Shown here: positions 19,484 to 61,522 of the stretch, in pieces
Layout of the letters: the number at the start of each line of letters is the position of its first letter
Position numbering within the stretch: the stretch's first letter is position 1
From: Oculina patagonica
Lineage: Eukaryota
NCBI RefSeq assembly: GCF_052425735.1
Contig: NC_135759.1
Coordinates: 15,624,001-15,688,000, forward strand
Length of the DNA: 64,000 nucleotides
Reading direction: 5' to 3'
Notes under the pieces: model-generated
What the model was told of the DNA's origin: nothing
Seen by the model: the letters and a program-made list of their open reading frames with translations, nothing else
Database searches by the model: none
Program-made: the position numbers and the translations under genes

Positions 19484-22400
19484 ATGCCAAGTAAGTTTTG
19501 TCGAATTTTATTTATGTCAGATAGAATTAACTAATACTTTAGGGCTCTTTGATGCCATGAATTTTGATATATTTTAAACTATGTTAAATAGCATTGATAA
19601 GCAACTATTCGGTATTTAAGGAATAGTATACTGGCTCTGAAAATTTATTGTGCAGACTAGAGAAGATGTCATTCACACTACATATTTTGCCAGAAAATTA
19701 TCTCCTGAAATAAGGGAGACACGGTGGCCTAATCGTTAGCGCACTGGACTCCGGATCGAATGGTCTGGGTTCGAGCCCTGGCCGGGGTCACGGGTGTTGT
19801 ACATGTGTTCTTGGGCAAGACACTTTACTCTCACAGTGCCTCTCTCCACCCAGGCGTATAAACGGGTAGAGGCAAAATATTGCTGTTGGTAACCCTGCGA
19901 TGGACTAACATTCCATCCAGGGGTATATATAAACACTCATGGTCGCTCCTAGTCGCTTGTTGCTATGTCATGGGGAAACCGGGATAAGCTCCGGCGGTCA
20001 GCCACTGAGCTCGACGCAGACTCTACCTTATCGCCTGAAATAAATACGTCTTTTTTCTCTGTTAGGATTTTTGAAAGCAGCACCAGCTCTATTGGTTCTC
20101 TTGTCTCTTGCGAACTGTTTACCTGTCGACAATCATCGATCGCCTCACTGCAAAGTCAGTAAAACAGCACAGAGCTTGATATGGCATTTATTACCAATGT
20201 CAATGACACTAGGAGGAAAGGTGTACAAGTCCTACACAAAAATAGTAAGTTTTTTTTACTTAATCACCCCAGACAGTGCTTTATTTCAAACATCCATTTA
20301 TCCTCCGGTCCGTCCTTTTCAGTCGTCAATCAGTCTGTCTCTCGGTCCGTCAGTCCGTCCAGCTCNNNNNNNNNNNNNNNNNNNNNNNNNNNNNNNNNNN
20401 NNNNNNNNNNNNNNNNNNNNNNNNNNNNNNNNNNNNNNNNNNNNNNNNNNNNNNNNNNNNNNNNNNNNNNNNNNNNNNNNNNNNNNNNNNNNNTGGTTGG
20501 TCATTCGCTTTTCTTACTTTCATTATNNNNNNNNNNNNNNNNNNNNNNNNNNNNNNNNNNNNNNNNNNNNNNNNNNNNNNNNNNNNNNNNNNNNNNNNNN
20601 NNNNNNNNNNNNNNNNNNNNNNNNNNNNNNNNNNNNNNNNNNNNNNNNNNNNNNNNNNNNNNNNNCGGATTGTCCGATATTTGGTACATCTCATATAAAA
20701 TTGATATCGTTCATCACGGTGTCCTGCAAACTTAATATTACTGTCTATTTTTTACCATATTCTTTAGTCTAACAAGTGGCTTGGAACAGCTGATCAATGG
20801 ACAGCAACCGACTTCTCGCTCTCTTTAGGTCCCCGACCACAAAATAGAACTGGATTGCAGGTAATGTTGATAATTTGTTTTATCCAATTTAATTTCACAA
20901 AAAAATGAAAAGCAAAAGGCAACATGCACATGATAACATTGAATGATCATACACAATAGCTGTTTTTTTTTTTTCATACAGAAACTTTAATTTTCAAAGA
21001 ATCGAAATTATCTGACAGAGGGGTTTGTCTCTCAGGAAATGAAATGATGAAAACCTATTTCTAGGGAATGCTATTTTTTCGTTCTATTGTCTCTTTGGGG
21101 GGCATCCAATATTAAAAATGTTGTCCTCAGTTTAAGTTTATAATCGGCTATCTCGTGAATGGGTTGTCTATATTTAATAGAATGTAAAATACCTCTCCTT
21201 CATTTTGTTCTCCATCTTATTCCATTTCATAAAAGTTGGCCCGTGACACACCTTAATAACTAATTCCCGTACCGTTTGTTTTCATGCAGTCTCGAGGTCT
21301 CCTTCTTGCTGATCACAACATTCTGAGTAGCTTCCTGTCCCTGATAAGAAATTCCACAGCCGAGTTTCAAAGATTTCCCAACGGCACAGCTGTCGTACAG
21401 CGTTTGACCAAATTGGAGGGCGAGCTGCGAGCCATGATAAGTATTTTGCGGAGGCTGGAGACAATTTTCAGTTTTGTAAGTACTGAATGTGTTCATTATT
21501 ACCTGTGTAACTCCTCAGCTATATATTCCCTGGTATACAGTAAAAACCCGCGAGTAAGAACCTAACATTTAAGAACCTGTTAGACCTCATTTTTGTATAT
21601 AAGAACTTGTTTAGCCTGAAATTTGAAAACAGGTTCTTATTTTCTATTTACTTTTGGGAAAATAAGTTTGGACAAGGCTTATACTGTACATGTATGCAAT
21701 GTCATGTTCTGAATGATTAGTGCTTCGTTTTTACATAAACACTTGTGTGCAAATTTTATACAAATAATAGACCAAATATCACTAAAAGTTCTATTAGCAA
21801 AAATATAAATTTTTCCTCATAAAATAAGAACCTATGATTCCCTAGTATTGCATTGCGCATCCTTACTGCGCAGAATTTTACGCGTAATGGGCGCGCGCAC
21901 ACAAACAAAATGGCCGCTTTCTATGCGGCTTGGTTCGCGAGAGAGATAAATCATCGTTTTCTCGTAAACGACGTAAACGAGTACGGTTACCTATCATTTT
22001 TTTCTCTTAGTTCGAGAGTAGTGATCAAATAAAAATAAATGAAGATCAATTTCTATGGCAGAATAATACATTATCAGCGAAAACGTGTACTTTGACAGTA
22101 CTCGCAAAGGAATTATTAAGCAATTATGTGGTATATACAAGGTCTTCCTTCTCCTAAACGAATTCGGTGACCCCCCTTTTTTATTTCAAAAATTTTTAAA
22201 GTTCCCTTAAGGTAATCAACAAACCGGCAAAGTTTGGTTGGAAATCTATGAGCAGTTCTATTTCACGTAAATTACCTTAAGTACCTAAATAGCCTTACTT
22301 TGTGTAAACTGCCATTTATGTAAGAACCTGTTTAGGTTAACCTGGAAAAACTAGGTTCTTACTCGCGGGTTTTTACTTTACTTAAAACGTAAGTACTTTA

Positions 22401-22882
22401 TTTCATAATATCGATATAAGATCTAGTGGTGCATGCTTCTCTATAGATTGTTATAAATTCGAACGGTTTTTCAAATCTCCTTGGTAACTGACGTAGAAGT
22501 AAGTCACATCGAAACATGTCTTACAAATTTAAAACGTCCTGATATTTCTAACATTTGCGAAATTTGCGTTTGATGAAGCTGAAAGGCCTTGCCAATTTGT
22601 AACGAGTTCAGGAAAATAATATCATCTCCACTTTTTTAGGGAACACAGACAAATGGGACTGCATTAATGGGATCTGTGACCAGCGGAAGTCACGTCACAG
22701 CAGTCATGCCCATGAGCACTTCTCACATCACTTCCCAGAACTCAACTCGACCCTCAAATTCTACTGTACCAACAATTCACAGCGTGGCGCTCCGTGTATC
22801 GCTGATTCTGGATGACCTGTATTCAAGCCTTCTTCAAATGGATGTCGATTTTAACAAGATGCGAAAGGCAAAATGCTTTTAA
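19484..22882 (+). CDS. Gene A: secreted four-helix cytokine-like protein, 5 exons, 235 aa
   Basis: Exons 19484-19490, 20066-20244, 20768-20860, 21290-21475, 22640-22882; all GT-AG, phases 1/0/0/0, frame open throughout. MPRFLKAAPALLVLLSLANC-LPVDNHRSPHCKVSKTAQSLIWHLLPMSMTLGGKVYKSYTKI|SNKWLGTADQWTATDFSLSLGPRPQNRTGLQ|SRGLLLADHNILSSFLSLIRNSTAEFQRF...LETIFSF|GTQTNG...IHSVALRVSLILDDLYSSLLQMDVDFNKMRKAKCF. The gene model is seen in the sequence; the cytokine call is inferred. Confidence 0.85.
19714..20027 (+). mobile_element. tRNA-derived SINE in intron 1 of gene A
   Basis: A box (TGGCCTAATCGTTAG) and B box (GGGTTCGAGCCC), body GTGTTCTTGGGCAAGACACTTTACTCTCACAGTGCC, and a 16-bp TSD TTATC[T/G]CCTGAAATAA at 19698-19713 and 20028-20043. 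Confidence 0.85.
20366..20665. other. Assembly gaps or masked runs of N in intron 2 of gene A
   Basis: Two runs of N, preceded by TCCG/TCAG microsatellite-like sequence. Confidence 0.9.
21538..22378. mobile_element. Tc1/mariner-type MITE with a nested dispersed repeat (intron 4 of gene A)
   Basis: TIR CAGTAAAAACCCGCGAGTAAGAACCTA with TA flanks. The internal segment at about 21840-22290 is homologous, inverted, to about 42655-43055. Confidence 0.75.
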
Positions 22883-26485: not shown

Positions 26486-28880
26486 ATGAAAGGTATGAAA
26501 TTTTCATAAAATTATTCTTAATTTGTCCTTAAAACTGTTGTTCCTTCTTCAATAAGCGATCACCATGACAAAATTTGATCTACGCTAGCTAAATTGTTGT
26601 TTAAGATTCTAAATATGAATTCTAGATGTTAAATTATTTTTCTCACCTTTCTTTTATTTTAAACAACTTTCTTTTTAATTTTTTATTCACCTTCTCGCTT
26701 CTTTAAAATCGTGCTTAATTTCTAGACACTTTTAAAAAGAATGATCTGCTCTTTACTAATGATAGCGGATACAAAATAAACGACACGTAACCGAGTGCTC
26801 TCGTAATACTGTTAAATATAATTTTTCTTTCACCTTCACAGTCATTTTAAAGATCAGTTTTGTTGCCTGTTGCATTCTTACGGTGACAACTTGTCTGCCT
26901 ACGAAACGTTCTTCACGATCACAGTCTTGGCCATGCCAAAGGGATAAAGATGTTCGTACATTACTCTCAGAGGCCTCAATTATGTCTCTAACTCTTGCAA
27001 GGCAAATCTCTGTCCTCAGCAACATCATGGTAAGTTAAGCCATCGTTTTTTATTAAGACGTTAATTTGTCAATTAGTTAAGAATTGTTAGTGCGTGCCTC
27101 AGTGGAGTTTACTCTTCGACCTATATTTTGAAATAACCCTCAGGACAAGTTAATTCCGTGCTGTCTGATTTCACTGTAGAATGTTTGCCGACCATATGCT
27201 ATTAGCTAGCTTAACACGAGCAGAAATTACACTATTTTTTTTAAAAGTAAATTTCATTTAAGTTTGAAGAACCTTAAATCTGGCGAACGGTTCTAAGAGG
27301 GTGTAGATATGTAGTTGTAATTTAAAAATTTGGTCATTTCATTATTCATTTGTATGGCCACGAGATATTGGGCATTAAAACTTTTTTAAAGCAAGATGAG
27401 GTCACAGAAAGTTTATTCCTTGGTTTTACAGAATAAAAAGTGGCCAACAGACCCCAACAAAGACAGCAACGTAAATTTTTTTGTGCCTGCTCGAAAGTCC
27501 AATAGAACCACAAATAAGGTAAGCAGGTATCGTTAATGGAGCGATGTTCTTCGACTTGCCCACTTAGTATAACAATTAAACAATCACTTCTGAGCAAATT
27601 CCCATCTCTGAGAGAAAAAGGCATGGTCAACATTTAGGCTGTTATGGACATTGCAGCAAGTCCCACAGAATTTTAGAATATTTCTTTGGGGGAGGGGGGG
27701 GGGGAGGGGGCTCAATTACGAAAATAATTTTTAAAAGTTAGGATGATTTCTGTAAAGATATACTATATTAGTGTATAACTCTGCTAAAATTAACAACCCT
27801 TTATTCTGTTCCTTTGTAATCGAATCAACGAAAAACCTAATTTATTCACATGTGATTTTAGAAACCTTCTCTTTATTTCAGCCTGAACAGATTCTCAGAG
27901 CGAACTGTCGTACTTTGAGAGCTTTCATCTCACTGGTGAATAATTCCACGAAACAGCTGAAACGTTTCCAAGCTGCCGAGGAACTGGTAACTAGCAAACT
28001 GGTGGATTTAAAGTTACAGGCAAAGTCACTTATAACATATTTGAGAAGGATTATGAAAGTCATAAAGTCTGTAAGTATTTCAAGTTCTTGAGCCTTTCCT
28101 GTAGGCTGCATGGTAAAAAGAAATGGATAAAAAAACTGAACAAACTGAACTATAAGTGACGATATTTTTTCGGTTAATTGCAAAAAACATTTATTGACGA
28201 ACAATCACAACTTAAGTTTAAAAAACACAGCTGAATTACCTTAAGTTACTAGTTACAGTAAAAACTAAAGAATAAGGAAAATTAAAATGCAAGTTCAAGT
28301 TAGGGCTTCTATCCTGGAAGGGTTTTTTAACATGTTTAGCCAGATAAATTACAATGCTTATAGATGATTACATAAAAATTACACACTACCTAGTTATAGG
28401 AAATGGTGATAAGTGTTGTTTACATGTATTTAGAAGAAAATTTTACAGATAGTCTAGCCATCCAGTGCAGACCATTTTTGGCACAAACGTTTTTAAAAGA
28501 ACTTTTAAAATTCGGGACGAAAAGATCTCAAAAAAGGACCTTTTAGAAGAGACCAACCTTTTCCATGACACCCAGCTAAATATGACGGTAATTTAAAAAG
28601 CACCGGTTCAAACGACGGTGTAAGTCTCTCTGACTAGTATGGTTAAAAATTTTTCCTTTTGTCTGATTTAATTCAACAGCAAAGACGAGGAAAAAGAAGC
28701 ACTGCATCACAAAGCGGCAAGCAGAGAGAAAACAACAACAAACCAGCGAGTCGGCCTGCCCAAACAGCAACAATCGAAGATATAACTTCACAAACTAAAC
28801 TCATACTGGATGACTTTAATGCAAATGTCCTGACTCTTGCCCAAGATTTATTTAAAATCAAGCGTCTTACTTGTAATTAA
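26486..28880 (+). CDS. Gene B: secreted four-helix cytokine-like protein, 5 exons, 223 aa
   Basis: Exons 26486-26492, 26842-27029, 27432-27518, 27882-28070, 28680-28880; GT-AG, phases 1/0/0/0. MKVILKISFVACCILTVTTC-LPTKRSSRSQSWPCQRDKDVRTLLSEASIMSLTLARQISVLSNIM|NKKWPTDPNKDSNVNFFVPARKSNRTTNK|PEQILRANCRTLRAFISLVNNSTKQLKRF...IMKVIKS|QRRGKRS...TIEDITSQTKLILDDFNANVLTLAQDLFKIKRLTCN. Confidence 0.87.
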
Positions 28881-32828: not shown

Positions 32829-35800
32829 ATGAAAGGCAAGAGTAAGCGATTTCTGTTACCATACCTAAAGAAAATATGCTCAGTGCTGCAGAATCACCGG
32901 GAGTACAATCTTCGGTCTTTTTTCATCTGTATTTCAAAGTTAAATGTCCAAACACTACAGTAGTTTACTGATAAACAACAAAAGAGGTGTAGTACCTCTC
33001 ATAAGAAAACCAAAAACTAAAAAAGATAGCTAAGTTCATGGAAGATTAAGAAGGTTTATTTACGTCACGTTTAGCAATTTAGGCAAAGCTGATCCAGAAA
33101 ATGTCACCTTTAAATTTCAAAACTAATTATTCCATTTCAGTATTCAGAGCAACTCTTTATTAGCATCCCCAATTTCTCAGAGCAATACCATCGAAAAATA
33201 TATGCCACTAAGTAAGAGGGAGTAACAGAGGAAGGGAGACGCAACCAATGTGCACTGAAAAGTCTCCATTAGAAATATCTAACAACGCTCTTAGCATGGA
33301 TTAAATGTATGTATGCATTCTTTCTATGCCAATCCTTTTTTAGGGAGTTTAACATTCAGTTTCCTTATCTGCGCCATTTTCACCGTGACTGTGTCTTCAC
33401 AATCGTGGCCATGCCAAAGTGATAAACTTGTTCGTAGAAGACTCTCAGACGCCTTAAGTCTGTCTCGAATTCTGGCAGGACAAATCTCTGCTCTCCGCAT
33501 CAATATGGTAAGTTAAAAGATCATTTTCCTTAGTGATATCTACTCTCTCGTGATAAACGTTTTTTACTGTGTACCAATTTTTCGTTTGAGCTTGTTTTCA
33601 AAAAGGCTATAACAAATGTTGATTGTTTCAGTCTAGAAGATGGCCACTAAGCCCCTTCAATGCGACCAACATTGGCTTTTTTGGGCCTCGTCGGAGATCC
33701 AACAAAACCGCAATTAAGGTAAGCACAGCTTTTAAATTAGAACCCCAAACGCAATGGACTTATTTATTATTGTTTTTCTTTTGCTCTGGAAAATTAACAG
33801 TAACTATATATGTAAATTCGAGATCAAGCCTGAGAAAATTTTCTTCTTCGGTAGTCGCTTTGTGATTGCATGCAAAATATAGAAACTCTTGTCAAAGGGG
33901 TACCTCATTTTGCGCAGGATCACGTGACGTATCTTGCACTGATGCTCGAATTATTTTTTGTTTTGGCAATAAGAAACGGAAATTCTTAGATAGCTCTGCA
34001 AGAATTGCTAAAACAACAGTTTTAATTCACTCCATCGAAAATAAAGAAAAACTGGGTACAACATACGCGAGTTGGTGTAGTGCGTTTTTTAACCTTTTTC
34101 CAAAACAGTCTTGACCTACTTTTATCTAGATATGTTTGTCTAAACATAAGCTTTATTTACGAGTTTACTGTGCTTTATTTTAAGAGTTGTCTTTGATACT
34201 AGTTCTAAATGTACAGCGAAGCTAGGTCAACGTTGTAATTAACGCATTATAAGCTAAAGGTGTAGCACTAGTAACTAATTGGAATTGAATAAAACAAGTA
34301 ATAAAGCACAACTATTTTTATAAAAAAAGTCTATTTTGTAGCATATCGTTCTCTGATCGAGTTCTAAAGCTCAAGTTAACTGGCCTCTATTTTTAAGCCT
34401 CAACAGATTCTTAAAGCCAACATCCGTACATTGAGGACCTTCATCTTGTTGATTGACAATTCTACAAGTCAGCTGAGAAGTTTTCAAGTTGTTGAAGAGC
34501 TGGTAACTAACAAACTGGTGGATCTAAAGAGACAGACAAAAACACTCAACAGCTATTTAAGATATATTGTTGCCATCATAACGTTTGTAAGTAGTTTTTG
34601 AATCTTTGGCTAAATTTGAAATAGCTGGGGAAAGTATATTTTACGTACATGATCCATTTATTATCTAATTATGGGTAGAACAAATGTCTTGATTGGTTCA
34701 TCAAACGATTAGAACAAATACTGGCTATCTCGAAACAACATTTTGCACGCAGTTAGGTCGCACTCTGAGCACAAACTTAGGGCCGAATCGCACTAGCGGA
34801 CAAATTTTGTAACAATTGGTAGATTTCATCATTAATGTGTCACTTGTTACAGTAAACAAGTGCGATTGCGTTTTTTGAGACCTAGAACTTGTCCAACATT
34901 TCAGGAAAACAAAGAAGCAGTTGTCTTATGATTGGTCCGCGTTGCACGCGCGATACATTTTGTCAAACATTCGCAAAAAAAAGTGCGAACGACTTGCTGG
35001 ACAAGGGCAAATTTTGTCAAAACGGACAAATCATCAAAGGGCCGGGGCCGATGTCATGCCTCAAGGCAGGACAATTCATGACAAGTCGCATTCCCATGCC
35101 CCTCGTAATGCTAGATAACAATTGGCTATTGTGTTTGGCCCAAATTGCACCGAAAAACAGCACGCACTAAAACATTGTTGGGATAGTATGCACAGTGATG
35201 TGGCTCTCACTATCATAATTCAGCCGCAAAATCTTTCCGCGATAAGCAAAGCATATTTATAAGTGAAGTGTTTCGGGTTAATGTAAGAATGAGAAAAGAA
35301 AAAGTTATCCTGAGACGACTCATAATTATACTGCATGAGAACACGCGTACTTTAAATGCGAATTGTTTTAGAATTTTTTACCGCGTGGTAATGCATATTT
35401 GATGTTTGCCCAAGACGGCCGTGCTGAGAAATGTACAGGGATGCCAGAAGCACGTGCAAAGCTATTGTACTAATAATTTCACCTTTTGTTCTCTTCAAGA
35501 TGTCTCTGACTCGTCGCGACAATTTTGTTTTTGTCGGAAATGTCATGAAATTTTAAACTTGTCCGCTAGTGCGATTCGGCCCTTAGTCATAGTTAAGAAA
35601 AACTTTATACATTTGGTGAAAAAGTGAAGTCACTTAGGCTTATTGCAAAAGTAGAAACCACCCTTTTATTAACTCCAGAAAAGCCGAATTAAACTTACAG
35701 TGCGGACACTCGAACCGTGAACACCAAGGCCTTTTTTCCCGCTTTTTTGCCATCATCCAATCACGAAGTGACTTCATAACGAGGCTGGTACATTTATTGA

Positions 35801-41613: not shown

Positions 41614-41892
41614 ATGAAAGGTGAGCGTTTTTCGACACCTAACAAGCCTTTTGATTTAATCGATAGACTGCGTTTGGTTCACTTTTGTCTGAGTACAAGG
41701 TAAAATAATTATCGTCGTTAAGCCACGTCCTAAACGAACAAGCTTCACAGTTTTTAGATTTGTAATTGTAATTTTATGTAGTAATTTTTTATGCTTTTAA
41801 ATTTTATGCTTTGTAAATTTTATGCTTTTTACTGGTCACCGATTGATACCAGTCAATCTCCTGAGACTGACCGGTCTACCAGGATAAATAAA

Positions 41893-41938
<46 letters not shown>

Positions 41939-44081
41939 GTGAGCAACTAACCATTTGCGAGAAGAAGTTCTTTACTGCGTTAATTACAAGTTTACAGAAG
42001 TTGCTCGGCTCGACATCTCTAAATCATCTACATCTACATCTACATTTATTAAGTTGATAAAATCTTATAAGACATCACATCAACTATTGTCCATATGCAT
42101 AAATTAGATAAAAATCATTCAGAACTATAGAATTTTTTTATGTTTTCTCTTTTAAATTTGAGCTAGTGCTAGCATAACAAGCTTTACAATTGGCTAAAAA
42201 ACTCATATGATATATTCCAGCCAATGACAGCAAAGATTTTTGAGCCAATCAGCTTCAAAATTGACTGTTTGATTTTACGAACATTTTCCCGCACACGTGA
42301 TCAGGAGTTGACTGCATAACTAACTGTTATTTTTCATTATTTTCTTTGTAGTTTTATTTTCTGTCTTTTGCACTTCGATGGCTATTTCCATGATACAAAC
42401 TCAGAAAGTATGTCAACTGGATAAGAACACTAGAGAACAATTGAGTAGATTGTTTCCGATGTTGCTAAAATTGGGAGTGGACCTGCTTAAGACAAAGGAA
42501 ACAATAATTGTAAGTATCTTCAATAAAAGTTGCATGTCTTAGCATTTTAATTTTTAAGAAAGGTCGATAACTTATTTATTATTGTAATATTAATTCAACT
42601 GTGTTTAATCCTGAGTTATATTAAGGTCATTCCACCGAAATAGAACTGAACATAGATTTTCAGCCAACTTTGCCTACTGGTTGATTACCTTTAGGGAACT
42701 TAAATTTTGAAATTAAAAAAGGGGGGTCATCATATTCGTTTAGAAGCAGGAAGACCTTGTATATACCGTATAATTCCTTAACAATTCCTTTGCGAGTCTG
42801 GCAAAGTACACGTTTCCGGTGATAATTTATTTTTCAAACATAGAAATTGATATTTATCATTCTATAGAAAGAATTTGATCACTGCACTCCAAATACGAGA
42901 AACAACTGATAGATCACCACACCCGCTTACGAGAAAACAACGATTTATCTCTCTCGCGAGCTAAAGAGTCAGATAGAAAAAAGCCGCCATTTTGTTTTCG
43001 TGCGCTCGCTAATTACGCGCAAAATTCTGCGCAGTAAGGATGCACAATACAGCATAGCCGCCTGTCTTTTACGTCCCCCACTCCCGTAGCAATTGCAAGT
43101 CGAAAATTTAATAATGTTTTATTACTTTCACTCCAGGGGAAAAGCTGGTTCAACTACAGCTACGAGACAGCAGACGTACAGTTGTCAGCGTTCCCAAATC
43201 AACAAAGTATAAATAAAACTACGGTAAGAACCTTCTTTGGTTTTCGTACTGACTCTAGACATTTCTGGAATTGACGAACAATTTGAGATTTTGTTTTGCA
43301 CGGAATTAACTCTAATATTCCAGACAATTAACATTTAATAGTAAGTGAGGAATCAGCTTTAAATTAACAGATACATGAAAGAAATAGGACTGTCAATTAT
43401 TGACCTTAAAGCGAATCAAATTTCGATATTTAACACAACACCATGCTTTTTTGAAGCAATACTGACTCAACGTTTCTTTTTTTTTTCAGGCTCAAAGCAC
43501 GTTGGACATGAACTGTCGAATTTTGAAAGCATTTCTCCCGATTATAAGCAAATTCAAAAGGCAATTTGGTGCCTTCACAGCTGCTAGGGATGTGACACAT
43601 CAGCTTCAAGAAATCAAATGGAAAGCTGGCACAACCATTAATTTAATTCAAACTATTCAAAATGCAGTACAAAAGGTAAATGAAATACATATAACTTTCA
43701 ATATTCCCCTGTTCCCCACTATCAATAGTGCAAAGTTCAAAAATTGTTTCCTCACTAGTATTGCTATTCTATTTCTTATACTATTTTTTAAACATAATTA
43801 CATAATGTAATGTAGGTTTTATTTCTTTATTACAGCCCGGCCAACCTCGTACAGCGGTCATCCGTCCCATCAAAAGCGCTGCCATTAACGCAACACGCAG
43901 CTTCCTTGGTGTGCGTACTAGTGCCCAGAGCTCCGCGACAACAAGACCCTCGGCGACAACTTTATCACTACATGACATTGCTCTGCAAGCGGCTACCATG
44001 TTGGACGATTTCTACTCCAACATTGTCAAAATGCAAGTGGATTTCTTAAAAGTTACCAAGACATTGTGCCCAACGAAATAA
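41614..44081 (+). CDS. Gene D: secreted four-helix cytokine-like protein, 5 exons, 227 aa
   Basis: Exons 41614-41620, 42352-42509, 43137-43223, 43490-43675, 43836-44081; GT-AG, phases 1/0/0/0. MKVLFSVFCTSMAISMIQTQKVCQLDKNTREQLSRLFPMLLKLGVDLLKTKETII|GKSWFNYSYETADVQLSAFPNQQSINKTT|AQSTLDMNCRILKAFLPIISKFKRQFGAF...QNAVQK|PGQPR...LHDIALQAATMLDDFYSNIVKMQVDFLKVTKTLCPTK. Confidence 0.85.
41895..41935. repeat. (TTA)n microsatellite
   Basis: About 13 perfect TTA units in intron 1 of gene D. Confidence 0.9.
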
Positions 44082-46080
44082 TGTCTCGAACTTTATCACT
44101 CCCACGATGTTATGAAGCTCAGGAGGGGAAAAATGTTTTTTTCTGTTGGTGAATTAAATAGTTTCGGGGAGTATAAAAATAACAACCGAGGAATTGTGAA
44201 AGTTCTTTGAACTACCAGTAAGGCAATATTTGCTTTAAAATGTTGTTTATCATTGTATGATTGCAGCGTAGCTTTTTATCTCCGTGAGATTTTTAAGATT
44301 GGCAAAACGAAACGAAATATTAAAAAAACAAGGTAAAATTGTATTCCTAAATGTAAGCCTCTGAAAGTGGTTGAAAATAAAAGTAGTGAAAATCAAAGTT
44401 ATAGATTCTTGTTTTGAGTTGTATTTAAACGTTTAAAACTTGCCGGGTATTGATTTTCTACTACCGTATTTATTCGATTAGCGCCCTGGGGAAAAAAAAA
44501 AAAAAAAAAGGGGGTTGGGGGGGCTATTTCTTTCTGTGTCTTTTTCCGGTTTAATCTGTGCAGCTATAAGAAAATAATGTATCCTCAGATTCTATGCCAC
44601 ATATTTGACCACTATCGTGACATTCTAATGCTATTTCTGTCGGAAGTACAGAAGACGATACGAATTACAATTAAAAATTAAAATACAATTTAAAATTAAA
44701 AATGTTTCCGGCATTGTGCTTACTACAGTTTAACAAGAGCAGTTTCTTTTGGTTTAATTTTTCAGAGGTATAAACACGCCACAGAATCGTACATTTTGGT
44801 TGAGCGATAAGTTCTGACTAAGTTGCCATATTCATCTGCTGCTTAGTGATGATAAGAGTTAACGGCATGGTTGCTAAGACACGACACAGTTGTTATACCT
44901 TTAGGTACTCTAGGTAAAGATGACTTCAAAGTTTACCATACAAATTTTATCATACCGAAATACTTAAATGACTAAGAAGACTTTTGTACAGAATATGTTC
45001 TCAAGAAATAGTTTGTGGGTATTTAATAATGCTGCGCGGAACTCACCATCCATGGGAATAGAGTGGCAGATCCGATGACGGAAATTACTTTACTTCTACC
45101 TTAACAGCAATGATCAACCAAAAGAATCTGCAAAAAAATGTACTATATACTTCTTTTGTGCATTTTTTAATGCACAATTCCTGGAATTGTCTGTTGCGAC
45201 TCTGTGCCAATCGATGTAGCTAATTAGTGGCAAGTATCTGCGTTGTTTTCATTGTCATTTTTGGTAAACCTGGTTTAACTAAACATGTTTTAATTAATTT
45301 GTTGATGCAAATGGAGTATCAAACAGTTATTCATCTCGCATTTAGTGAATATCGATAAATGTTTGCCTCAACCTCTTTTCGGTCAACGAAGCGAATAAGT
45401 TGTTACTTCATTTCCTATAAATCGAGATTCAGAACATTTGAATAAAAGTCAACTAATATGAGTTGATTTCTTAAATGTACAAAAAAACTGTGAACAGAGG
45501 GAGAAGACGGAAAGGGAGTGAAAATTATTTGAGCAACTATGCGCTTTAATTGGGGAAGGGGGGGGGGGGGGCCCTCTCAAATTAATTTTTCCATTGAATC
45601 CCTCCCCTGCTAAATGGTGCACAGTCGCAAGTCACATTTATCGTCATACACATTCGTTGAAATTATCGTCAACTTTAATTAGTTCAAGAGTGCTAGCTAC
45701 ATGCTCGTTTACATTCATTTTTCTTCTTTTTGTGCATATTGGTGCAATATATACTAGTTATGCAACGCATTCGGGTGGTATTCTATGGAATATCTCTCTT
45801 GTTTTTTTTTTTTTTCTCTTTACACCGCGCCTTTTGGGGGTGTGTATGAAAAAAAAAAAAAGGGAAAAGGGGATATCCATATAGAGAAATTTTTTATTTT
45901 TTATAAAAAAAAAAATTTTTTTATACCCAGCGCAGGGGTGGGTGACTTAATTTTTTTTTTTTTTTTTTATAAAGCAATATATCATCTCCCATGGGAAGTA
46001 CACTGGATGATACAAAATTATATATATAGCGTATCGTTGCTAACCTATCAATAATTTTGCATTTCTAAAAAAAATCGCCT

Positions 46081-48590
46081 TTAATTGCAAGTTTGAGCTG
46101 CAATTTTCCGTAAATCGCTGGCCAGATGGAAAACATTTGTGTAAAAGTCAACCAATATGATTTGAGTTCGAAAAGCCACATCTTCAATGGTTGGAGAGGA
46201 CCCCATACTCGTTGAATTTAAAGGCTTGGTTTGGACAGACCGACTGGCAGGTTTGCTGTCAGTGTCGTTTTTCTTTTGACCGTCTTGTTGTTCAATGCTC
46301 CGTTTTCCTCGCCGACTCTGTGAATTGAATGACAAAAATATTTTATCAGATGAGTACTGACATTTTGAAAAACCGAGAAACAAAATAGGTTTCAGGTCCA
46401 ATTTGTTTAGCACATGCAATAGGCCTAAGTGAAGCTATCTACAATTTTGGAAGTCGGTTATCTTGTTTGCAATTTATAAGGAATTCTCTCCCAGCACATC
46501 GACTTTGGATGATTGCGCGACTTTATTGCATGCAAAAATAAGTAACTTCTGTGATCTTTATAAAAAACAGGTATGTGTTTTATTCTACCAATGTTACTGC
46601 AGGATTGCCTTAAATCATTCTCTTCACGTTAGAGCAGCTTTTAGTTGAGTGTCGTAAATCCAAAACCGAAGTAATTACTCTGACCAATCACAAGGGACAC
46701 TTACTATTCAGTAAACCAATCAAAACTCAAAGTAATTACATGTAGTCGTCACCAAGCGCGCGAAAACGTGCGCGAGTAAACTCACAATTGGTTTTGGTTT
46801 TACTTCTAATTGGGTGAGAAAGTGGCGTGATGTTTTAAAGCCAATCAATGAGCGTAGTAATGCAAAACCAAAGTAAAATCAAATTACTTTCGATACTCAA
46901 GGGGAAACTGCTCTTACACGAAGGCGCAATATCTACTAACCGATTTGATGATTGTCACAGTTCTTTTCAAATGGCTTATTACTGTCCTTGTCCGTCCTTT
47001 CTAGACCCACCAGTTGGGTAGTTACCAGTCCTTTAGCGACAGGAAAACGGCTCAGCTGATTGGTGGAATTATCCAGCAGTATGACGAAGGTTCTCAATAT
47101 ATGAATGTTTGCTTTGAGGATCTGTTCAGGCTGAGGTAAAGAAAGCGCATTTGATTACTTGAATGTCTAGACATCAGAATAAAGGCCTATCGGTCAGCCG
47201 ATTGAAAAATCATTCAACAATCTATCAGGATAAGAAAATCTAAGGGAACTTTTAGAAAGCCTAAACTCATTGCACTAGCTTCGCTTCGGCATGCAACTGA
47301 ATTAGGAACTGAGAATATCTTAAATCTTTTCAGTTTTATTGTTTTTTTTTTTAAACAATAGTTACAACTTTGAATAAACAGTTATTTATTTGTCAATATA
47401 ACAATAGTGATTTTAAACGAGCAAAGGAAAAGATATTTTATTACGTATTAATATTACAGGTAATTTATTTCAAGTACATAGCTCAACAATGACGTGCTAT
47501 CAGGTAAAATAAAAATGCATATGTGTAATCTTAAATCAGGTGGCAACTGATTTGTTGGCCATACTCAAAGAAATAAAAAGTATTTTTCTTTTGTACATCC
47601 AAACAAAATAATTCAAGTGATGGACAAGAGATATCACGTGATCGCATCGATATTAAGGGTTCGTGTGTTGCTATGCAACAGTATTTACCAAACTGAATCA
47701 AATCGCAGCAGCCAGTTTATTGCGAGGATGGACAGACCCAGAAAGAACAGGCCAGAGCAAAAAAAATTATGAAAATAGCCTTGGCCTTGGCCTCCTATGG
47801 GGCAATAGTTAAACAGCTCTTCCTACCTTGACGGTTTTGTTGAGTTTGGGACGAGGCCCAAAAAATCCAATATTGGTTGCATTGAAAGGACTTGGTGGCC
47901 ATCTTCTAGACTGGAACAATTAAAGAAAGCAATTCAAATAATGATTTTGGTGAATTGGAGTTAATGCCACTTTGCATTGTTCCTCGACTCGCCTTTTTGT
48001 GGTCTTAGCTGGTTTTTTTTCTGACGTTTATCTTTCTTTATTCTGTACAGAATAGAGGGAAAATGACATTTGTGTATGCAAACAACACAGGAATTGACAA
48101 CAGTTTAGAGTAAGTATCACTGAATTAGTACTTTCGCTAGAGAAACTAACCAAGCATTTTTTGGGAATGAAGTTTATTTTCAGACAAGAAACGAAGAAAA
48201 AATCAACCGGGAAACTCAGCCCACATTGGGTGGGAGGGAACGGAAGAAAATACTCGTGGAATCAACGACAGGCAATGAACGCCTCACAATACCAACGAGC
48301 ACGCCCCTCGTAACACGCTACACATTAATGTCCGAAGTAACTGAACATACGCTAGCTCTATTTTTTTAAGCTGGGCTAAAAATATAACGATGTAAGGGTT
48401 GGGGTTAAATTTACCATGTTGCCGCGGACAACGGAGATTTGTTCTGCCAGGACGCGAGAATTGATCAAAGAATCCGAGAGTAAGGCTTTAATATCTTTAT
48501 CCCTTTGACATGGCCAAGCAGCACTTTTGGCAGCAAAACAGTTCGTCATGGCGACGTTACACCAGGGAAGGAAACTAGTTGTCAAACTCC
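46081..48590 (-). pseudogene. Gene E: paralog closest to C and B, with a +1 frameshift in exon 4 (pseudogene or assembly error)
   Basis: Exons on the minus strand: 48590-48415 (..WPCQRDKDIKALLSDSLINSRVLAEQISVVRGNM), 47910-47827 (SRRWPPSPFNATNIGFFGPRPKLNKTVK), 47130-46941 (190 nt versus 189 in B and C; extra base near 47001), 46317-46081 (SRRGKRS...ILVDFYTNVFHLASDLRKIAAQTCN). Exon 1 is not securely located. Confidence 0.75.
46632..46913. mobile_element. MITE in intron 4 of gene E
   Basis: Imperfect TIRs GAGCAG...TTGAGTGTCGTAA / TTCGATACTCAA...CTGCTC with TTA on both flanks and internal CCAATCA repeats. Confidence 0.65.
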
Positions 48591-53363: not shown

Positions 53364-53462
53364 AGTGTGGAACTGTTATACTTCTTTCCTCAAGTTTTAA
53401 ATTCCGGTGTTGCCTACTTTGAGGCTGTAGGTTTGAGTGGTGAATCACCGAAGTATCCATCC

Positions 53463-53469
53463 TTATATA
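53463..53469 (-). promoter_or_regulatory. TATA box of gene F
   Basis: TATATAA on the minus strand 106 nt before ATG 53363. The context GCAGGAACCTTTAGATA.GTATATAA is shared with gene G. Confidence 0.65.
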
Positions 53470-54957
53470 CCTATCTAAAGGTTCCTGCTTTGTCAGCTGA
53501 GGGCCAAATTTAGGATTTTCTTCCACAACTCTGCAAGACGCGAAATACTAAGTCGGTCGTACTAAGAAATTTGACCGTCCGGTCGAATTCAATTATCTTC
53601 TTTAATCCCAAAAGCAGGTGGAGAACTGTAGCCATGTCCCTAAACATAACTTTCCAATTTAAATATTTTTTGTCAAATACCAAGAGAGTTTAGTCTCTTT
53701 CTGCAACCAAACAGGCAACAGAAGGCAATTTTGAGATACCGCCTAATGGCCAAATGGACAACAAATTTTCATTTTTTTTTTTAATAATACCCATGTCATT
53801 TTTTCACTTCAATCGATTTGTCTTGACGCAACACATTGTTATAGATTTGTATGCAGCTAAGCCTGGATTTAAGAAAATATCTCCCACTGTTATATCGAAG
53901 CTACGTCCGCTGTTGCAATTTCACCCGGGTTCCTCTGATTACCAACATTTCAGAAGTAGATCTGATGATTCTTGCTGGCATGCCCTGTGAATTGCATGAA
54001 ATAACTACAAACAGTGTAACATGCCAGTACCATAATTTTGTTTACGCAAAAATATGACAGAAAAATGTGATTTGCGTTCGAAACATTGAGGAGGAAAATA
54101 AGGCATGCGCAGACCCGATAACTTCGCTTCAGAAGAACTCTTCCGGTCAAATTATTTCGTTGTCATAGCTAAACTTACATCCATGATAACTTTGAAGGTA
54201 GGTAGTAAAGTGCGATTTTTACTAATTTTAAATGTTCATTTTTAACATCCCGTACTTTTAACCTTCCTCTAAATATTGCATATTAAAAAAAGAACCGAAT
54301 TCCTCCCTTTTAAACCAATTTTGTGCTAGCTAGATGAAGAACATGGTCACACATCTATCACGTAATTACATGTACATCACATGTTTTGTTTCCTCGATGT
54401 CAATCAAAACAAAAAATATTTGGCAAGCCGTTAGTGCAACACTTAAATATCCCTCGTTCGATTATCACAACTTGTATTTTTTTGTTTGTAGAAAATTTCC
54501 GTCTCTTTAACAGGCCATGTTACGCAGTATCTCACGCATGTTCTAGGTTGTTATCACCGACCATGACCTCAACTTGTTTTCACCAAGGAGCATGCACTTG
54601 AAGTGATTTTCAAAGGTATAAATTGTAAGGCTTGGTTGTTAAAAGAGGTTAACGCAAATGCAAGAATAAGCTATCCACTGAAGATAGAAATGAAACTTGA
54701 TCCTTTGAACCTGATGGTTGATGAAAGTTACATCATGTCGATACGCTGATGCACTTGAATAGGTCGAGTTCAGTAAGTTTCAAGTTTTGGCTACTCGGCG
54801 ACAGTACCTAAATCCTTAAACGAAAATATAAAACTGAATTTATTCAATAATTTTAAGTAGAGTACTTCGTCTTCATCCGATTTAACTTTGGTAGACTGAA
54901 GAGTTAAAAGAATCATGTGGTATGGGCGACCAAAGAAGCACCTTGATTACTCCCTTA

Positions 54958-55094
54958 AGCCTGGTTCTCATATGATCGTCCCGATCGTCTCTGTCGCTTC
55001 TGTCGCTTCAAAAAGTTGCTGCTCCAATCACCTCAGACTTTGCAAACGACAGAAGCGACAGAGACGATCGGGGCGATCATATGAGAACCGGCCT
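54958..55094. mobile_element. Hairpin-like PIF/Harbinger-type MITE
   Basis: TIR of about 48 bp (GGTTCTCATATGATCG.CCCGATCGTCTCTGTCGCTTCTGTCG) with TTA TSD. Confidence 0.8.
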
Positions 55095-56329
55095 TTAGAT
55101 AAACAGAAGACTGCGAGGAAACTGTTGTATAAGTTGAAATAAAACCAACCATCGTCATTGTTAAAAGCTATAAGTTAGACTTATTAAAGATCAGTAAAGA
55201 CCGGCAGTAACACAGTTACAGAATGAACTCTTTTGAACCGTCAGCGAAAATTGAAACAAAATACTTTGATCAGTTATAGGGTGATAACTTTGTCATATTT
55301 TCCCAATATGTTGATAAATTTTCATATCTGGAGGTCTTATCTGACCCATAACGTCATAACATAAGGCAAGTTAAAGTAAAAGATGTTGAGACCATGTTAT
55401 GTCGTAATTCAATGGCAATAAACAAACTTAAAATTGCTTATTATCAGGACAAAAATGAAGTCGACAAGGTGTAGCACTAAACTCGTTCCCAGGTTCTCTC
55501 TTGTTCCCGTCCCTGGAACTGGAGACCCTTTAATACTCAACTGTAGTTGCATTCTTAGTTCTCTATGTACTACAATTTAACTATTATTCAAAGTTTTTAT
55601 ACATGTGGTGCATTATTGAGCTGTAATATATTGGTGTCGGATCTACACGATTGAGTTGTCTACAAAATGAATTGTGCTAGCTGGTCTGTTCTGAAATTCT
55701 GGTTACATTGCATGCACAGGCTAATTATTTGATCAACTGCACTCATAACAAAACTCTTATTAAGTCCTGTGAGCAACTGCTGGGTGAACTACAAAAGCAA
55801 ATGGCTTGAATGGCGGTAATTTCATTTTACTACAAAGCAGCTTAGAATACGCGCCAATGAGAGGAGAGCAAATGTGTAAGCGCATGACACGGGTTTTACG
55901 CGCGACAAAAGCACAATTCCAAAGCTATTGTCAACTTAATTAAACTTTTTCACCTAACAGCGCAAAACTTGTGAAATACGTCCGTGTGTCACGGTTATTT
56001 GTTGAAGAAATGATGTATTATTCAATCACGTTTGCCTTTAGTACACTGGCAAAGTAATTTTTAGCAAAACTGGACCACTATTCGTAGTTTCCATTATTGC
56101 ATGTCTTAAGACTTTCGAGTTTTTGAAGTGAAGCTGGTGATAGTGTCCCTTTAATATAATCACGAATGAAATTTTCCAAATTGCTCATTGACTTGGACAC
56201 TTAACTGGACAAATGCGTTAGGCATGCTTGTATAGGGGGCTGGCAATATAATATAAGATAATAATTAAAGTAAAATGCATAAAAAGTCAGAGTTAATCCA
56301 AGATACTAGCTAGATTTTTACAGGCCGGG

Positions 56330-57515
56330 CTAGCGCTAGCAGCGTTATATTCAGTGTTTTCCATAAAATAAACAATTTCATGCAGATTTTTCACTGCCAC
56401 AAAAATTACGACAAAACATGGCCGTTGTATTTTTTATCAGATCAGACCACCACGGGGATAAAGACTCCAATCGACACACTGTTGCACACGTTAAAACTGA
56501 TAAAAGTACTTTGATTTAATTGTTCCTGATGATTCAGGAGTAAACTTCAACATTTTTTTCTGCACATTATAGTACCAGGACTGAGTTTTTACTGCGATTT
56601 TCCGACACGAACGCCTCAATCTGGTTTTATCTTTATCGACTCCAATCGGAACCCTGCTTATCCTAAATGGCGTAGTTGTCACTAAGGTGGTCCATTTCAT
56701 GGTTCGATTTGGAGACAAACGAAGTATTAAACTTCTTATCACTTCAATTTGAACGTTTCACTGTACCAGCGAACGTGTTCAGACATTTACTAGTTCGATC
56801 TCCCTGATAAACCAAAGCATGAAAATTCAGCCGATCGCGACCTCATTCAAAGTTTTTGTTTAGCTCATATGCGATCAAATTTTGTTTCCATCTCCAGGGT
56901 AGACAGTTTCTTCTTATATTTACCCTCCCTATGTTCCTAGCATGACAAATTTGATCTCTGAAAATTAAATTCAAGTACATGCAGTGTATATAAACAACAA
57001 GAAGAAGAAGGGGCTGTGCGGCCATAACATCCTTAGACCTTTTGGCTTATAACTGAATAATGAATGGGCGTTGGATGAGATATCGATAACACGGCCCGTG
57101 AAAGTGACCGAGACTTTCCATAAATGAGAAATACAAGCGTAAAAAATTGATTAGAGTATGCTGGAAGACTTCAATGTCGTACTAACGGTTTGTCTAACAT
57201 TAGTTGTTTTGCTTCGACTCTCTCAGACTCTCGTCGAGTGAGGAAGCAAGCAAAACATGCGATTATATTAACATTGCACATGTAGCTACATGTATGATAC
57301 TGATTTGTGTTTATGTCCTTCACCTAGCTAAATTGAAGTTAGATTGAATTTAAATATAAAAAGTCTTGCAAATAGAAGAAATGTTAACGAGTACAGGATG
57401 TTGGAATTGTTTTAAAACTAGTAGAGTCCTCGCACTTTACTACCTACCTTCAAAGCTATCATGGATGAAAATTTAGCTATGACAAGGAACAAAAATTTGA
57501 CCGGAAGATTTCTCC
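56330..57515 (+). repeat. Upstream region of gene G, duplicated at 62805-64000
   Basis: Colinear high-identity match over about 1.2 kb, for example CCATAAAATAAACAATT.CATGCAG, AACCCTGCTTATCCTAAA, AAATGAGAAATACAAGCGTAAAAA and CGCACTTTACTACCTACCTTCAAAG. Confidence 0.9.
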
Positions 57516-58169
57516 ATATGAACGAGTAAAAGCCATTGTGCTGCGTCGTTTTGCCTTCAATGTCCCAACGAAAATATCACATTTTGTCTCATGTTTGTGC
57601 TCACAAATTAACGCTAATGGCGCGTAACGCTGCTACTCATTTCATTCAACACAGGCAGAGCAGCAAGAGTTATCAGATCTATTGTTGAGCTGATGGTAAT
57701 TGGAAGAACCCCGCCTGAAATTCCAGCAGCAGATGTATGATAAAACAGTGGGAGATATGTTATTAAATTCATGTTTAGCTACATCAAAAATTAATAACAA
57801 TTTTTAAACCCGGATAAGTTAACATTGACAGGATTAATGTTTCAAAATATAAAAGAATGCCAAAACGTAAACTAACAAGTCATTGTCAATAAGGTTTCTA
57901 AAATTTGCTTGTATATTGACTGGGATCTATTAAAATCAATTAAATTTCAGGTATATTTGTCAAAAATTATCAAAATTAGGATGAAATGGTTAAGGGATTC
58001 CATATTTTTTTGCCACCTGTTGAAATGACTGAAGAAAACTTAAATTAGACTGTACAGCGGATGAAAAAATTCCGCAACCTTGCATTGCATCTTGTAGAGT
58101 CGGGAAAGTAACCGAACTAAAAATCTTAAATTAGACCCTGAGCTGACGAAGCAGGAACCTTTAGATACG

Positions 58170-58177
58170 TATATAAA
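58170..58177 (+). promoter_or_regulatory. TATA box of gene G
   Basis: TATATAAA 104 nt before ATG 58274. Confidence 0.65.
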
Positions 58178-58273
58178 GATGGAAACTTCTAAGATTCACC
58201 ATTCAAATCTACAACCTCAAAGTGAACAACACGAGAATTTACAAGTTGAGAAAAGAAGTGGAACAATCACAAT

Positions 58274-61200
58274 ATGTCAAGTAAGTGAGATTCAAGTGGT
58301 GTTATCAATGACTGTATTATCTTTTGTTTTCATTGTTTGATTAGATACCGGCTGACATGTTAATCTATAGGCAGTGTTTGTAATAATAACTATGTATTTA
58401 CTTTTCTTTAACCAATAGTCAAATATTGTTCAACTCCAACTTTAGTTATTTTGTCTAACACCAAGTTTTTTCTCAGTAAACTGATAACTTGTTTGCTGCT
58501 GAACGGTTTTCACATTTTTCTGCATGTTTTGTTCGGTCGTTCAAGTGCGATTTTATACCGACCTTCAGTGCGCCTTTTTATGAAATTTGTATGGAATTAT
58601 TATAACTCTAGACGATAAACTCAATAAAAAAGTTTAAAACTTTGGCAGAGTTTTAAAATTCCGCGCGTTAAATGACCAAGGGACCTAAAGGCTCTGGATA
58701 AAATGTTAATAAGTATAGTGTACTCAGAGATTCAGTTTATTTTGTTTATTTAAATACATTGTTTTAATTTTCACTGAAGAAACATTCTTAATTTATGGCC
58801 AGTTCTAATTGGTGACAAAACAGTTCCGAAAATTTAACAATACTCCCAGCTTCGTTTCACTTTGTTAATTTGGCACGGTGGAAGTCATAGCAAGATGCTC
58901 ATACGTCTTATTAAAAAATTCAAAGTAACACACAAAAAAATCAGAATAGTGCATTTGTGTCAAGTGACGTCATAATTAAGACTACATTGAGGTTAGAATA
59001 CATATGATTACTGCAAGGGTGGATCAAGGATTGCACCAAAGGGAGAGGGGCGAAGTGAAATGGGCCTGACGTTTGCTGAAAAGAAATGGCAGGCGGGCGA
59101 GAGAGAGTGAACGTAGGCCTTTACTAGCCAAACAATGTGTGGCAAAAATGTCTGGATCATTTCGGCCTTATTATTTTAGTAAAAAGAGAATGGGGAGGGG
59201 GAATAGGCTCGCCCCCCCTGTTCCCTTGATCCGCCACTGCAATGAACTAAAGACCGCAAAGACTTGATGTACTGATCCCCTCCCTTCCTGTCTTAGGGTA
59301 GAAAAGATAGGAGAACCATGCACGCACAGTTTAAAAATTTAGCTGTCAACAAGATCTAAACCTTATTTTAACAGTCCTGCATACTTAATTTTTAATGCTA
59401 TTTTAATTTCGCAGGTCCTCGAACAAAATGTTTCCCAATCTTTTATGTTATATTTCTTCTCTTGGCTATGTTTCACGACACTCCTGTGCAAGCCGGCTGT
59501 CCTCGTGGAGCTCGATGCTCGGGAAGGGCCGGGCTCCGTCGGGATTTGCGAAAAACTATCGTCGCACTGTTTGATTCGTCACGTCTTCTGGCTGGCTTGA
59601 CATCTAGAGCTTTAAACTACACGGCGAGTAACGTACATGAACAAACAGCATTACTTTCAAATATTAAAGTTAACCTGAAAATAATAGTTTTTCTAACATA
59701 GGAAAACACCAAACAATTAACAAAATACCGAAAATAAACAAGGATGGTTTGAACTGAGAAAGTTTAAAACGCATTTCGAACGAAAAACTTCGAAAAAACT
59801 TGATCATTTTTTTCCAAAATGAGCATTCCTTCATCAAGCCTGGTTGTAAAAGTTAGACAAATTAAAGCTACTCGAATTTTTTTTATCCCAGCTTTTACAT
59901 TTTTTGGATTCAACTTTCTTATTTGGCAAACAAAACTATGATGATTTCCATCAGGCATCTGACGTTGTTAAAAATCGAAACAAAAAAGATTCTGAGTAGT
60001 TGTGTTAGTAATTGATTGTAAAATAATATTTATTCATAAAATTTGTTATCGATAACTTTGATTTCTATCAAACACTGATAGATCTTTTTGCCGGTACGGC
60101 GGCCATTTTGATTTATATTGTTTGGAAGACATTATGGGATGCTAAGGGAGCAAGTTTTCTATTATTTGCCCCTTGGTCATCCCATAATAGCTATTTAACT
60201 CCTGCAATATATAGACGAACTCAAATTTTTTGACCCATAGCAATGAGTGTTCAGTCAAAGAATAAAGACGGCAACAAGATTCAACAGAATCGAAGTTACA
60301 CAATCATATTGTATACTGTAATCAATAATTGATTATGTCGGCACGAAAACTGAAGCAAATGATTGATACTGTTATGTTTTTGTATTTCAGAATTTTCAGT
60401 TCAACGTCACTGATTCATGTAACCCAACCTGTAACTCGTTGATTTCTGCGGTGATGGCGGACATGAACTTAACTTCATCCAGTTGGACCAATACATCGGT
60501 AAGACTTGGACTCTACATTCAGATTTCAGATTTTTATTATTTGCTTTTTTTACTCATCCTCTTACACAGCTTTACATTTTTTTAAAGTGCTCCGGTTCTT
60601 TTTGTTCGTTTTTTTTTTTCTGTTTTTTCATTTCAACTTTCTTTATATTTGACAAAGCTAACTATACTCACGTTCTAGAATACACCAACCTCCTGCATTT
60701 AAACATTTACACAAAAAATAACTATGGTTTCGTTTCTAATATTTTTCAGAGAAGCAACCTACTGGAATTTTACAGAAGAGCTACTCTCGGCTACAGCCAA
60801 GAGCTTACACAATCAATGGCCGAACTGTCGCGTGTACAGAAGGTGGCAACATCTCCTGCATATTTGAAGTCTTTGGAAGACTTTATGAAGAACACATTAA
60901 AAGGCTTGGTCTTAAAGGCAGTAAATAGGGTATGTCAATTTTTTTTTAAATCAATTTGCAATTTGCGTGTGAGACAGACAGATGCCACTTGCCTTTTTAT
61001 TTATAATTAAACGGTGCTGTTATATTAATTTCCGGGGGAAGGGGGAAAGTTAAAGATGGGTGAGGTTGCTCGTCGTCTTGGGGTGTAAATAACGGATTTT
61101 GATCTCACTTATATTAGGTAGCCTGCGTTGCAGACGAACAAAACCCCGGTATAGTCCGTCTATACCGGGGTTTCGTTCGTCTGCAACGCAGGCTAATATT

Positions 61201-61522
61201 AGGTTGTTCAGGCCAGACTAGCACTTAGTCGGATATAGTTTAGTTCTAAAATACACAAATGGAGGTTACCTTACTTAGCTATTTACAAATTTATATTATT
61301 TTCCTCCTTCTTCTTCCATTTCAGGATCGAAAACTCAATGGACTCCCGGCGCTCATCACTACTGCTGGTCAGCAGCATTCCTTTACACCGGTTCGGCCCC
61401 AGTCCCTCGATGCAGTGGCATGCCATATTTCACAGTGTGTTTTAAGCGACTTGTACGCAGTAGCCAATCAAATGCTCATAGATTTCTTCAAAATTAAAAG
61501 AAGTCTGCAAATGCAGAAATGA
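58274..61522 (+). CDS. Gene G: secreted prolactin/GH-like four-helix protein, 5 exons, 233 aa
   Basis: Exons 58274-58280, 59415-59623 (GC donor ACG|GCGAGT), 60391-60498, 60750-60929, 61325-61522 (7/209/108/180/198 nt). MSSPRTKCFPIFYVIFLLLAMFHDTPVQA-GCPRGARCSGRAGLRRDLRKTIVALFDSSRLLAGLTSRALNYT|NFQFNVTDSCNPTCNSLISAVMADMNLTSSSWTNTS|RSNLLEFYRRATLGYSQELTQSMAELSRVQ...KAVNR|DRKLNGLPAL...VACHISQCVLSDLYAVANQMLIDFFKIKRSLQMQK. Confidence 0.87.
61119..61195. mobile_element. 77-bp fold-back hAT-type micro-MITE in intron 4 of gene G
   Basis: TAGCCTGCGTTGCAGACGAAC...GTTCGTCTGCAACGCAGGCTA, almost wholly palindromic, with an exact 8-bp TSD ATATTAGG at 61111-61118 and 61196-61203. Confidence 0.85.

Follow-up and report, generated by a model that had tools for sequence, protein, structure and literature searches.

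Do stony corals produce extracellular ligands of the class-I helical cytokine type? The question is raised by a stretch of 64,000 nucleotides (nt) from the genome of the stony coral Oculina patagonica (GCA_052425735.1, CM126636.1:15624001-15688000), referred to here as the window, whose positions are used for all coordinates below unless otherwise stated. Within it lie seven related genes, A to G, which a preliminary description made from the DNA letters had presented as a hidden cluster of secreted, four-helix cytokine- or hormone-like genes. In the literature searched, class-I helical cytokines have been reported from bilaterians only and not from any cnidarian. We have examined the gene models, the relatives and the predicted structures of this family, and the reading that we favour, with a probability of roughly 0.6, is that the locus holds a tandem cluster of small secreted N-glycosylated proteins which have a long-chain class-I cytokine fold, probably so in the case of A to E, and which act as ligands. 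An ORF containing exon 4 of gene G matched NCBI proteins of O. patagonica, and a locus of this species agrees with 54676-64000 at 100% identity. The identity of the source as a coral removes the objection that the DNA might prove to be that of a chordate with orthologues already known.

Structure of the gene cluster

Gene A was used as a tblastn query against the window, and three-frame reading with inspection of the splice sites then recovered all seven paralogs, each on the strand originally assigned to it. Six of the seven are intact five-exon genes encoding 223-235 amino acids (aa). Gene A (+) occupies 19484-19490, 20066-20244, 20768-20860, 21290-21475 and 22640-22882, with exons of 7/179/93/186/243 nt and a product of 235 aa, and is followed by gene B (+; 26486-26492, 26842-27029, 27432-27518, 27882-28070 and 28680-28880; 7/188/87/189/201 nt, 223 aa), gene C (+; 33202-33211, 33344-33507, 33632-33718, 34398-34586 and 38059-38289; 10/164/87/189/231 nt, 226 aa) and gene D (+; 41614-41620, 42352-42509, 43137-43223, 43490-43675 and 43836-44081; 7/158/87/186/246 nt, 227 aa). 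Gene F is found on the opposite strand (-; 53363-53357, 52626-52421, 51791-51684, 50252-50073 and 49573-49382; 7/206/108/180/192 nt, 230 aa) and gene G again on the forward strand (+; 58274-58280, 59415-59623, 60391-60498, 60750-60929 and 61325-61522; 7/209/108/180/198 nt, 233 aa). In agreement with the architecture first proposed, intron phases in the spliced models of all six intact genes are 1/0/0/0, the first coding exon measures 10 nt in C and 7 nt in the other five, and exon 2 begins with a typical signal peptide. Splice sites are GT-AG throughout, the single exception being a GC donor after exon 2 of gene G. The remaining member, gene E (46081-48590, -; exons 2-5 present), is a frameshifted pseudogene, as indicated by an exon 4 with one inserted nucleotide (190 nt versus 189 nt in B and C), a weak or decayed signal peptide and an exon 1 that could not be found.

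The tiny first exons require comment. The exon of A is present in the GenBank model of that gene (P0057), those of B, D and G are supported only by the N-termini of orthologue models from the coral Desmophyllum, and those of C and F follow from the pattern alone. Because B, C and E have no DNA similarity in their upstream regions, exon 1 is not locatable by comparison of these paralogs and was sought by pattern searches.

The translated proteins share several features. Judged by direct reading of the translations, the signal peptide of all six intact proteins consists of a short basic stretch, then 12-20 hydrophobic residues, then small residues. The N-glycosylation sequons previously noted are present as claimed, N[RK]T where exon 3 ends in A to E, and NST within exon 4 of all of these except D. 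A helix-D motif, [ILV]L.D[FL]...[VLI]..[LM]..D[FL].K[IMV], had been described as common to the family; it is exact in A, B, C and E, and D, F and G each depart from it by one mismatch. Two subfamilies differ in their cysteines, A to E having one immediately before helix A and one at the C-terminus beyond helix D, and F/G having extra residues in the form of an N-terminal C-x5-C, a C-x3-C in the AB loop and one cysteine in helix D. In B and E, exon 5, which encodes the CD loop, opens with the furin-type motif R-R-G-K-R-S (28680-28700 in B, 46317-46300 in E), and the Desmophyllum orthologue of B has R-R-G-Q-R-S at the corresponding site. Cleavage at the B/E motif would part helices A-C from helix D.

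Predicted fold of the F/G type

The proteins were analysed through database copies, namely gene A itself (P0057) and the orthologues P0009, P0059 and P0063. The F/G type is represented by P0063, for which an AlphaFold model built on a 21-row family alignment reached a predicted local distance difference test score (pLDDT) of 80.4 and a predicted template modelling score (pTM) of 0.78. Its helices span residues 7-46, 80-112, 117-146 and 175-207. The AB and CD loops are long and the BC loop is short, and the model shows an up-up-down-down four-helix bundle with crossover loops, which is the topology of long-chain cytokines. Foldseek comparison with the PDB returned long-chain cytokines, at a probability of 1.0, as about 40 of the top 50 matches; CNTF gave template modelling (TM) scores of 0.66/0.77 at 3.6 Å. 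Against the Swiss-Prot models the top 30 matches were without exception IL-11, prolactin, growth hormone (GH)/somatotropin, somatolactin or cardiotrophin-2, with TM scores of 0.45-0.68. A single-sequence ESMFold model of the same protein from the ESM Atlas (pTM 0.72) had an IL-6 cluster as its nearest structure (TM 0.60/0.61 over 178 residues), and a shape search of the Atlas with the AlphaFold model led to a CLCF1 cluster (TM 0.70).

In language-model features, P0057 (A), P0009 (B type) and P0063 were nearest to the IL6, Hormone_1, LIF_OSM, IL11, GCSF, CNTF and IL12A clusters, with scores of 0.92-0.94 and 201-218 of 256 features in common; by the tool's own warning such scores serve as leads only. 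The modelling strongly supports a long-chain class-I cytokine shape for the F/G type, the closest predicted shapes being those of IL-11, CLCF1, CNTF, IL-6 and prolactin/placental lactogen.

Relationship between the subfamilies and gene layout

Extension of this fold to A to E depends on their relationship to F/G. Alignment of the A-E profile with the F/G profile by hhalign gave an E value of 5e-5 over 183 colinear columns that cover the mature proteins in full, and the three introns within the domain fall at the same alignment positions and in the same phases in both subfamilies. Homology of A-E with F/G is well supported by this alignment, the coinciding introns and phases, the common cluster and the common helix-D motif. 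The cytokine fold probably extends to A to E, which are tied to it only through this homology.

The gene layout corresponds to the helices. Helix A is encoded by exon 2 and the AB loop by exon 3, helices B and C share exon 4, and the CD loop and helix D are both encoded by exon 5; the first intron, in phase 1, interrupts the signal-peptide region and the three that follow are in phase 0. The coding exons of human IL-6 are 19/191/114/147/168 nt, those of GH 10/161/120/165/198 nt and those of EPO 13/146/87/180/156 nt, in each case with phases 1/0/0/0, and the sums of these values match the known lengths of the coding sequences (CDS). The exon, phase and helix partition had been put forward as the hallmark of long-chain class-I cytokines, and the coral genes have this layout. 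The conserved architecture of the IL-6 gene shows the same exon-helix layout as the coral genes (PMC13081863).

Conservation in stony corals

Relatives were sought with a profile of exon 4 from A to E, which gave 46 hits among 1.84 billion representative proteins, and further searches yielded full-length relatives. A mixed alignment of exon fragments on P0001, a G-type model discussed below, was too badly aligned to serve as a profile and was set aside. The named relatives belong to six coral genera (Desmophyllum pertusum, Acropora millepora, Montipora capricornis, Pocillopora, Stylophora and Oculina), all scleractinian and representing both major coral clades, and all are labelled 'uncharacterized'; Stylophora SpisGene4907 and Acropora LOC114961842 are two of these orthologues. 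In Desmophyllum, neighbouring genes encode proteins of the F/G type (OS493_011864), the D type (011865 and 011867), the C/E type (011868), the B type (011869) and the A type (011870), an order identical to that in the window. The Desmophyllum orthologue of B (P0009, 215 aa) has the same layout, that of D (P0059, OS493_011865, 227 aa) is colinear with gene D including the MKV start, and the F/G-type orthologue P0063 uses the mini exon and exon 2. The cluster is conserved across Scleractinia. Sequence searches indicate a previously unnamed family that is found only in stony corals and consists of two subfamilies, A-E and F/G.

Tandem copies of gene G

The cluster extends beyond the window, with at least four more G-type genes located downstream at a spacing of 6.4-8 kb. 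Gene G heads a tandem array of at least five such copies; all five are intact, and each has an ATGTCAA mini exon and an intact exon 2. The exon 2 donor is GC in G and G3 and GT in the other three. The ratio of nonsynonymous to synonymous substitution rates (dN/dS) among the copies is 0.13-0.18, exon 2 being likewise constrained, and the G-type copies are under purifying selection. G and G3 are identical across all coding exons and G2 differs from G4 by three synonymous changes only (record positions 15688676-15712832, directly past the end of the window, for the downstream copies), near-identities which point either to a two-gene unit of 12.9 kb that was duplicated very recently or to an assembly duplication.

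The GenBank model P0001, of the G-type copy adjoining G, leaves out exon 2, the signal-peptide exon, and takes an upstream ATG as its start. The gene called by GenBank at G itself, from 58179 and of 195 aa, probably shares this structure. The upstream ATG opens a conserved frame of about 34 codons, 'METSK.../MDTSV...', found at 58179-58280 for G and at 53371-53460 (-) for F, which overlaps the mini first exon in another frame. This frame, which P0001 uses, was rejected as the true start: in F it reaches the shared donor in a different phase, the exon 2 that the model skips is under purifying selection, and Desmophyllum P0063 uses the mini exon together with exon 2. If transcription begins further 5', the frame could act as an upstream open reading frame (ORF).

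Annotation and expression

Current annotations miss or mis-model most genes of the cluster: B is not called in the GenBank gene set, P0001 lacks its signal-peptide exon and G is called at 195 aa. RefSeq isoforms exist for C, one of which, XP_078358552.1 isoform X2 (P0005), covers exons 2, 4 and 5 and starts at another ATG. A further RefSeq model, LOC144641423 (P0064) on a 7973-bp contig, reads from F-type exons 3-5 into E-type exons 2-3 and is out of frame in exon 3; this junction of F-type with E-type exons points to an alternative haplotig on which transcription runs on from F into the E pseudogene.

Confirmation of the exons by RNA, as envisaged in the preliminary description, was obtained at two places only. 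Four RNA runs were compared with gene B and few contigs resulted. A contig from run X22 crosses the junction of exons 4 and 5 of gene C exactly at 34586|38059, and a second, starting at 28680, shows splicing to the acceptor of exon 5 in a B-type gene. The mini exons are supported by reads in none of the genes and are drawn from annotation models or pattern.

Other features of the window

Two assembly gaps, N runs at 20366-20493 and 20527-20665, both fall within intron 2 of gene A (20245-20767). They touch no exon, the donor and acceptor of the intron both lie outside them, and the gapless paralogs have no extra exon at this position; the spliced CDS of gene A is in frame, and its product is letter for letter that of GenBank ACROYT_G005621 (P0057). 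Intron 1 of gene A contains a stretch (19715-20030) that on reading of the sequence resembles a short interspersed nuclear element (SINE) or other repeat. Sequencing runs from several other coral species share 31-mers with parts of the window, possibly on account of repeats of this kind. Intron 4 of gene C extends to 3.5 kb because it contains a transposase relic, an ORF at 37021-37518 (-) with a paired-box/helix-turn-helix match typical of the N-terminus of Tc1/mariner-type transposases. An isolated exon 5 (helix D) relic of the B/C/E type was detected at 45424-45504 (-) by tblastn of the family proteins against the window.

Immediately upstream of the cluster, a head-to-head pair of apparently intronless genes (10962-12230, -, and 14286-15362, +) encodes proteins of 359-423 aa with FERM_N, FERM_M and FERM_C domains only; both are present in the GenBank annotation. 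An exon-sized ORF at 655-1179 (+) has a calcineurin-like phosphoesterase (Metallophos) match and probably belongs to a CPPED1-like gene.

Discussion

A number of results weigh against the interpretation of this family as cytokines. Sequence methods are silent: hmmscan against Pfam, with E values up to 10, gave no cytokine family for six members, and a family profile compared with all PDB sequences found no cytokine and nothing relevant, so the proteins are not placed by sequence in Pfam IL6, GCSF, IL11, CNTF, LIF_OSM, Hormone_1 or EPO_TPO. Nor was any sea anemone, octocoral or hydrozoan match obtained in the profile and sequence searches of the 1.84 billion representative proteins and the follow-up searches. 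The lack of a sequence link and the restriction to Scleractinia both speak for convergent secreted four-helix bundles that have no class-I receptor and serve, for example, in lipid or small-molecule carriage, in the skeletal or mucus matrix, or as toxins or antimicrobials. Helical bundles, moreover, readily give middling structural scores, and the language-model 'recognition' value for P0057 lies under the tool's usual threshold. Common descent is not provable from fold alone; the matching gene layout makes convergence less likely while the stony-coral restriction leaves room for it, and on this evidence we consider convergence unlikely. A still less probable explanation is that the models represent chance open frames or dead genes. 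E is indeed broken, G and G3 have a GC donor and RNA evidence is scarce, with no O. patagonica RNA run listed as containing the D-E stretch, so that support from expression is thin. Against this stand six intact five-exon frames with canonical sites, orthologues across both major coral clades, the dN/dS of 0.13-0.18, and spliced RNA contigs and RefSeq models, which together make decay or chance highly implausible.

The remaining points against the cytokine interpretation concern A to E. The alignments behind the models were shallow, with 13-21 rows. The AlphaFold model of mature gene A, made from 13 rows, has a pLDDT of 62.7 and a pTM of 0.58; between its four long helices (15-46, 71-99, 106-138 and 181-211) the AB and CD loops are long and the BC loop is short, and Foldseek places prolactin and somatolactin at the top, yet with TM scores of 0.26-0.30. 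It resembles generic up-down bundles, and because all four helices align to up-down designs this low-confidence model almost certainly has a simple up-down topology and is treated as giving no support for a cytokine fold. The ESMFold model of a B-type orthologue likewise found generic up-down bundles and no cytokine match. Combined with an identity between the subfamilies of 16-26% and an hhalign probability of 67%, these models suggest that only F/G might be cytokine-like, A to E being ordinary up-down-up-down bundles whose likeness to F/G is too weak to transfer the fold. However, the input to both low-confidence models was either shallow or a single sequence, and such input favours the simplest topology. 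The two subfamilies also agree in exon number, in intron positions that are identical in the profile alignment, in phases, in the long AB/short BC/long CD loop pattern and in the helix-D motif, they occupy one tandem cluster that is conserved in Desmophyllum, and in language-model features the A- and B-type proteins lie near the same cytokine families. A cytokine fold confined to F/G appears rather improbable. The up-up-down-down bundle forecast for the whole family is borne out by the P0063 model, which matches long-chain cytokines, and not by the gene A and B-type models; the lengths of helices and loops in A to E do agree with the long-chain pattern. The broader claim of a class-I cytokine ligand family draws on the predicted F/G fold and the gene layout, and is countered by the A-E models, by the sequence methods and by a distribution that is scleractinian in sequence searches.

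If the cluster does encode cytokine ligands, its products would be secreted after signal-peptide cleavage and, as N-glycosylated extracellular ligands, would bring together receptor chains with cytokine-receptor homology modules, candidates being the orphan CRLF3 or a gp130/Domeless-like chain, with receptor engagement leading to activation of JAK and STAT. The tandem expansion and fast divergence are typical of cytokine and hormone ligand loci. Reports place the orphan class-I receptor CRLF3, whose natural ligand is not known, in animals from Cnidaria to mammals (PMC6797617, PMC8063046), and EPO is reported to activate the insect CRLF3 (PMC6797617). JAK and STAT co-occur in Cnidaria, and IL-6 was found only in vertebrates in a 2026 survey (PMC13203501).

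A more tentative proposal, which we hold at somewhat less than even odds, is that the coral genes are vertically inherited homologues of the bilaterian IL-6/GH/EPO superfamily, of which at least one would be the endogenous ligand type, long sought, of the orphan CRLF3 or of a gp130-like chain and would drive JAK/STAT in an animal outside Bilateria. True homology would mean that class-I helical cytokines predate the cnidarian-bilaterian split. The case for such an older origin rests on fold and gene structure, and not on a wide cnidarian distribution, because sequence searches find the family in Scleractinia only. The cluster supplies concrete candidate ligands with which the origin of cytokine, receptor and JAK-STAT signalling becomes testable at the bench, and it may be relevant to the biology of coral immunity, stress and growth.

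Comparison with known ligands reveals both differences and correspondences. The IL-6/gp130 family (IL-11, CLCF1, CNTF, IL-6, LIF and IL-27 p28) has no detectable sequence similarity to the coral proteins, for which there is no Pfam hit, and differs from them in cysteine pattern, as well as in the confinement of the coral family to stony corals. GH, prolactin, placental lactogen and somatolactin (Hormone_1) gave no sequence or profile hit either, and the coral proteins appear to lack the small C-terminal disulfide loop of this group. The known invertebrate JAK/STAT ligands are the Drosophila Unpaired proteins (Upd1-3), secreted, glycosylated, helical ligands of a gp130-like receptor, which are larger than the coral proteins and for which we know of no solved structure; no Upd protein turned up in the searches made, in which the coral family was not compared directly with Upd. 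EPO corresponds to the coral genes in gene structure, its exon sizes, given above, being strikingly near to theirs, and the cysteine pair of A to E, before helix A and at the C-terminus, occupies the position of the EPO Cys7-Cys161 bridge.

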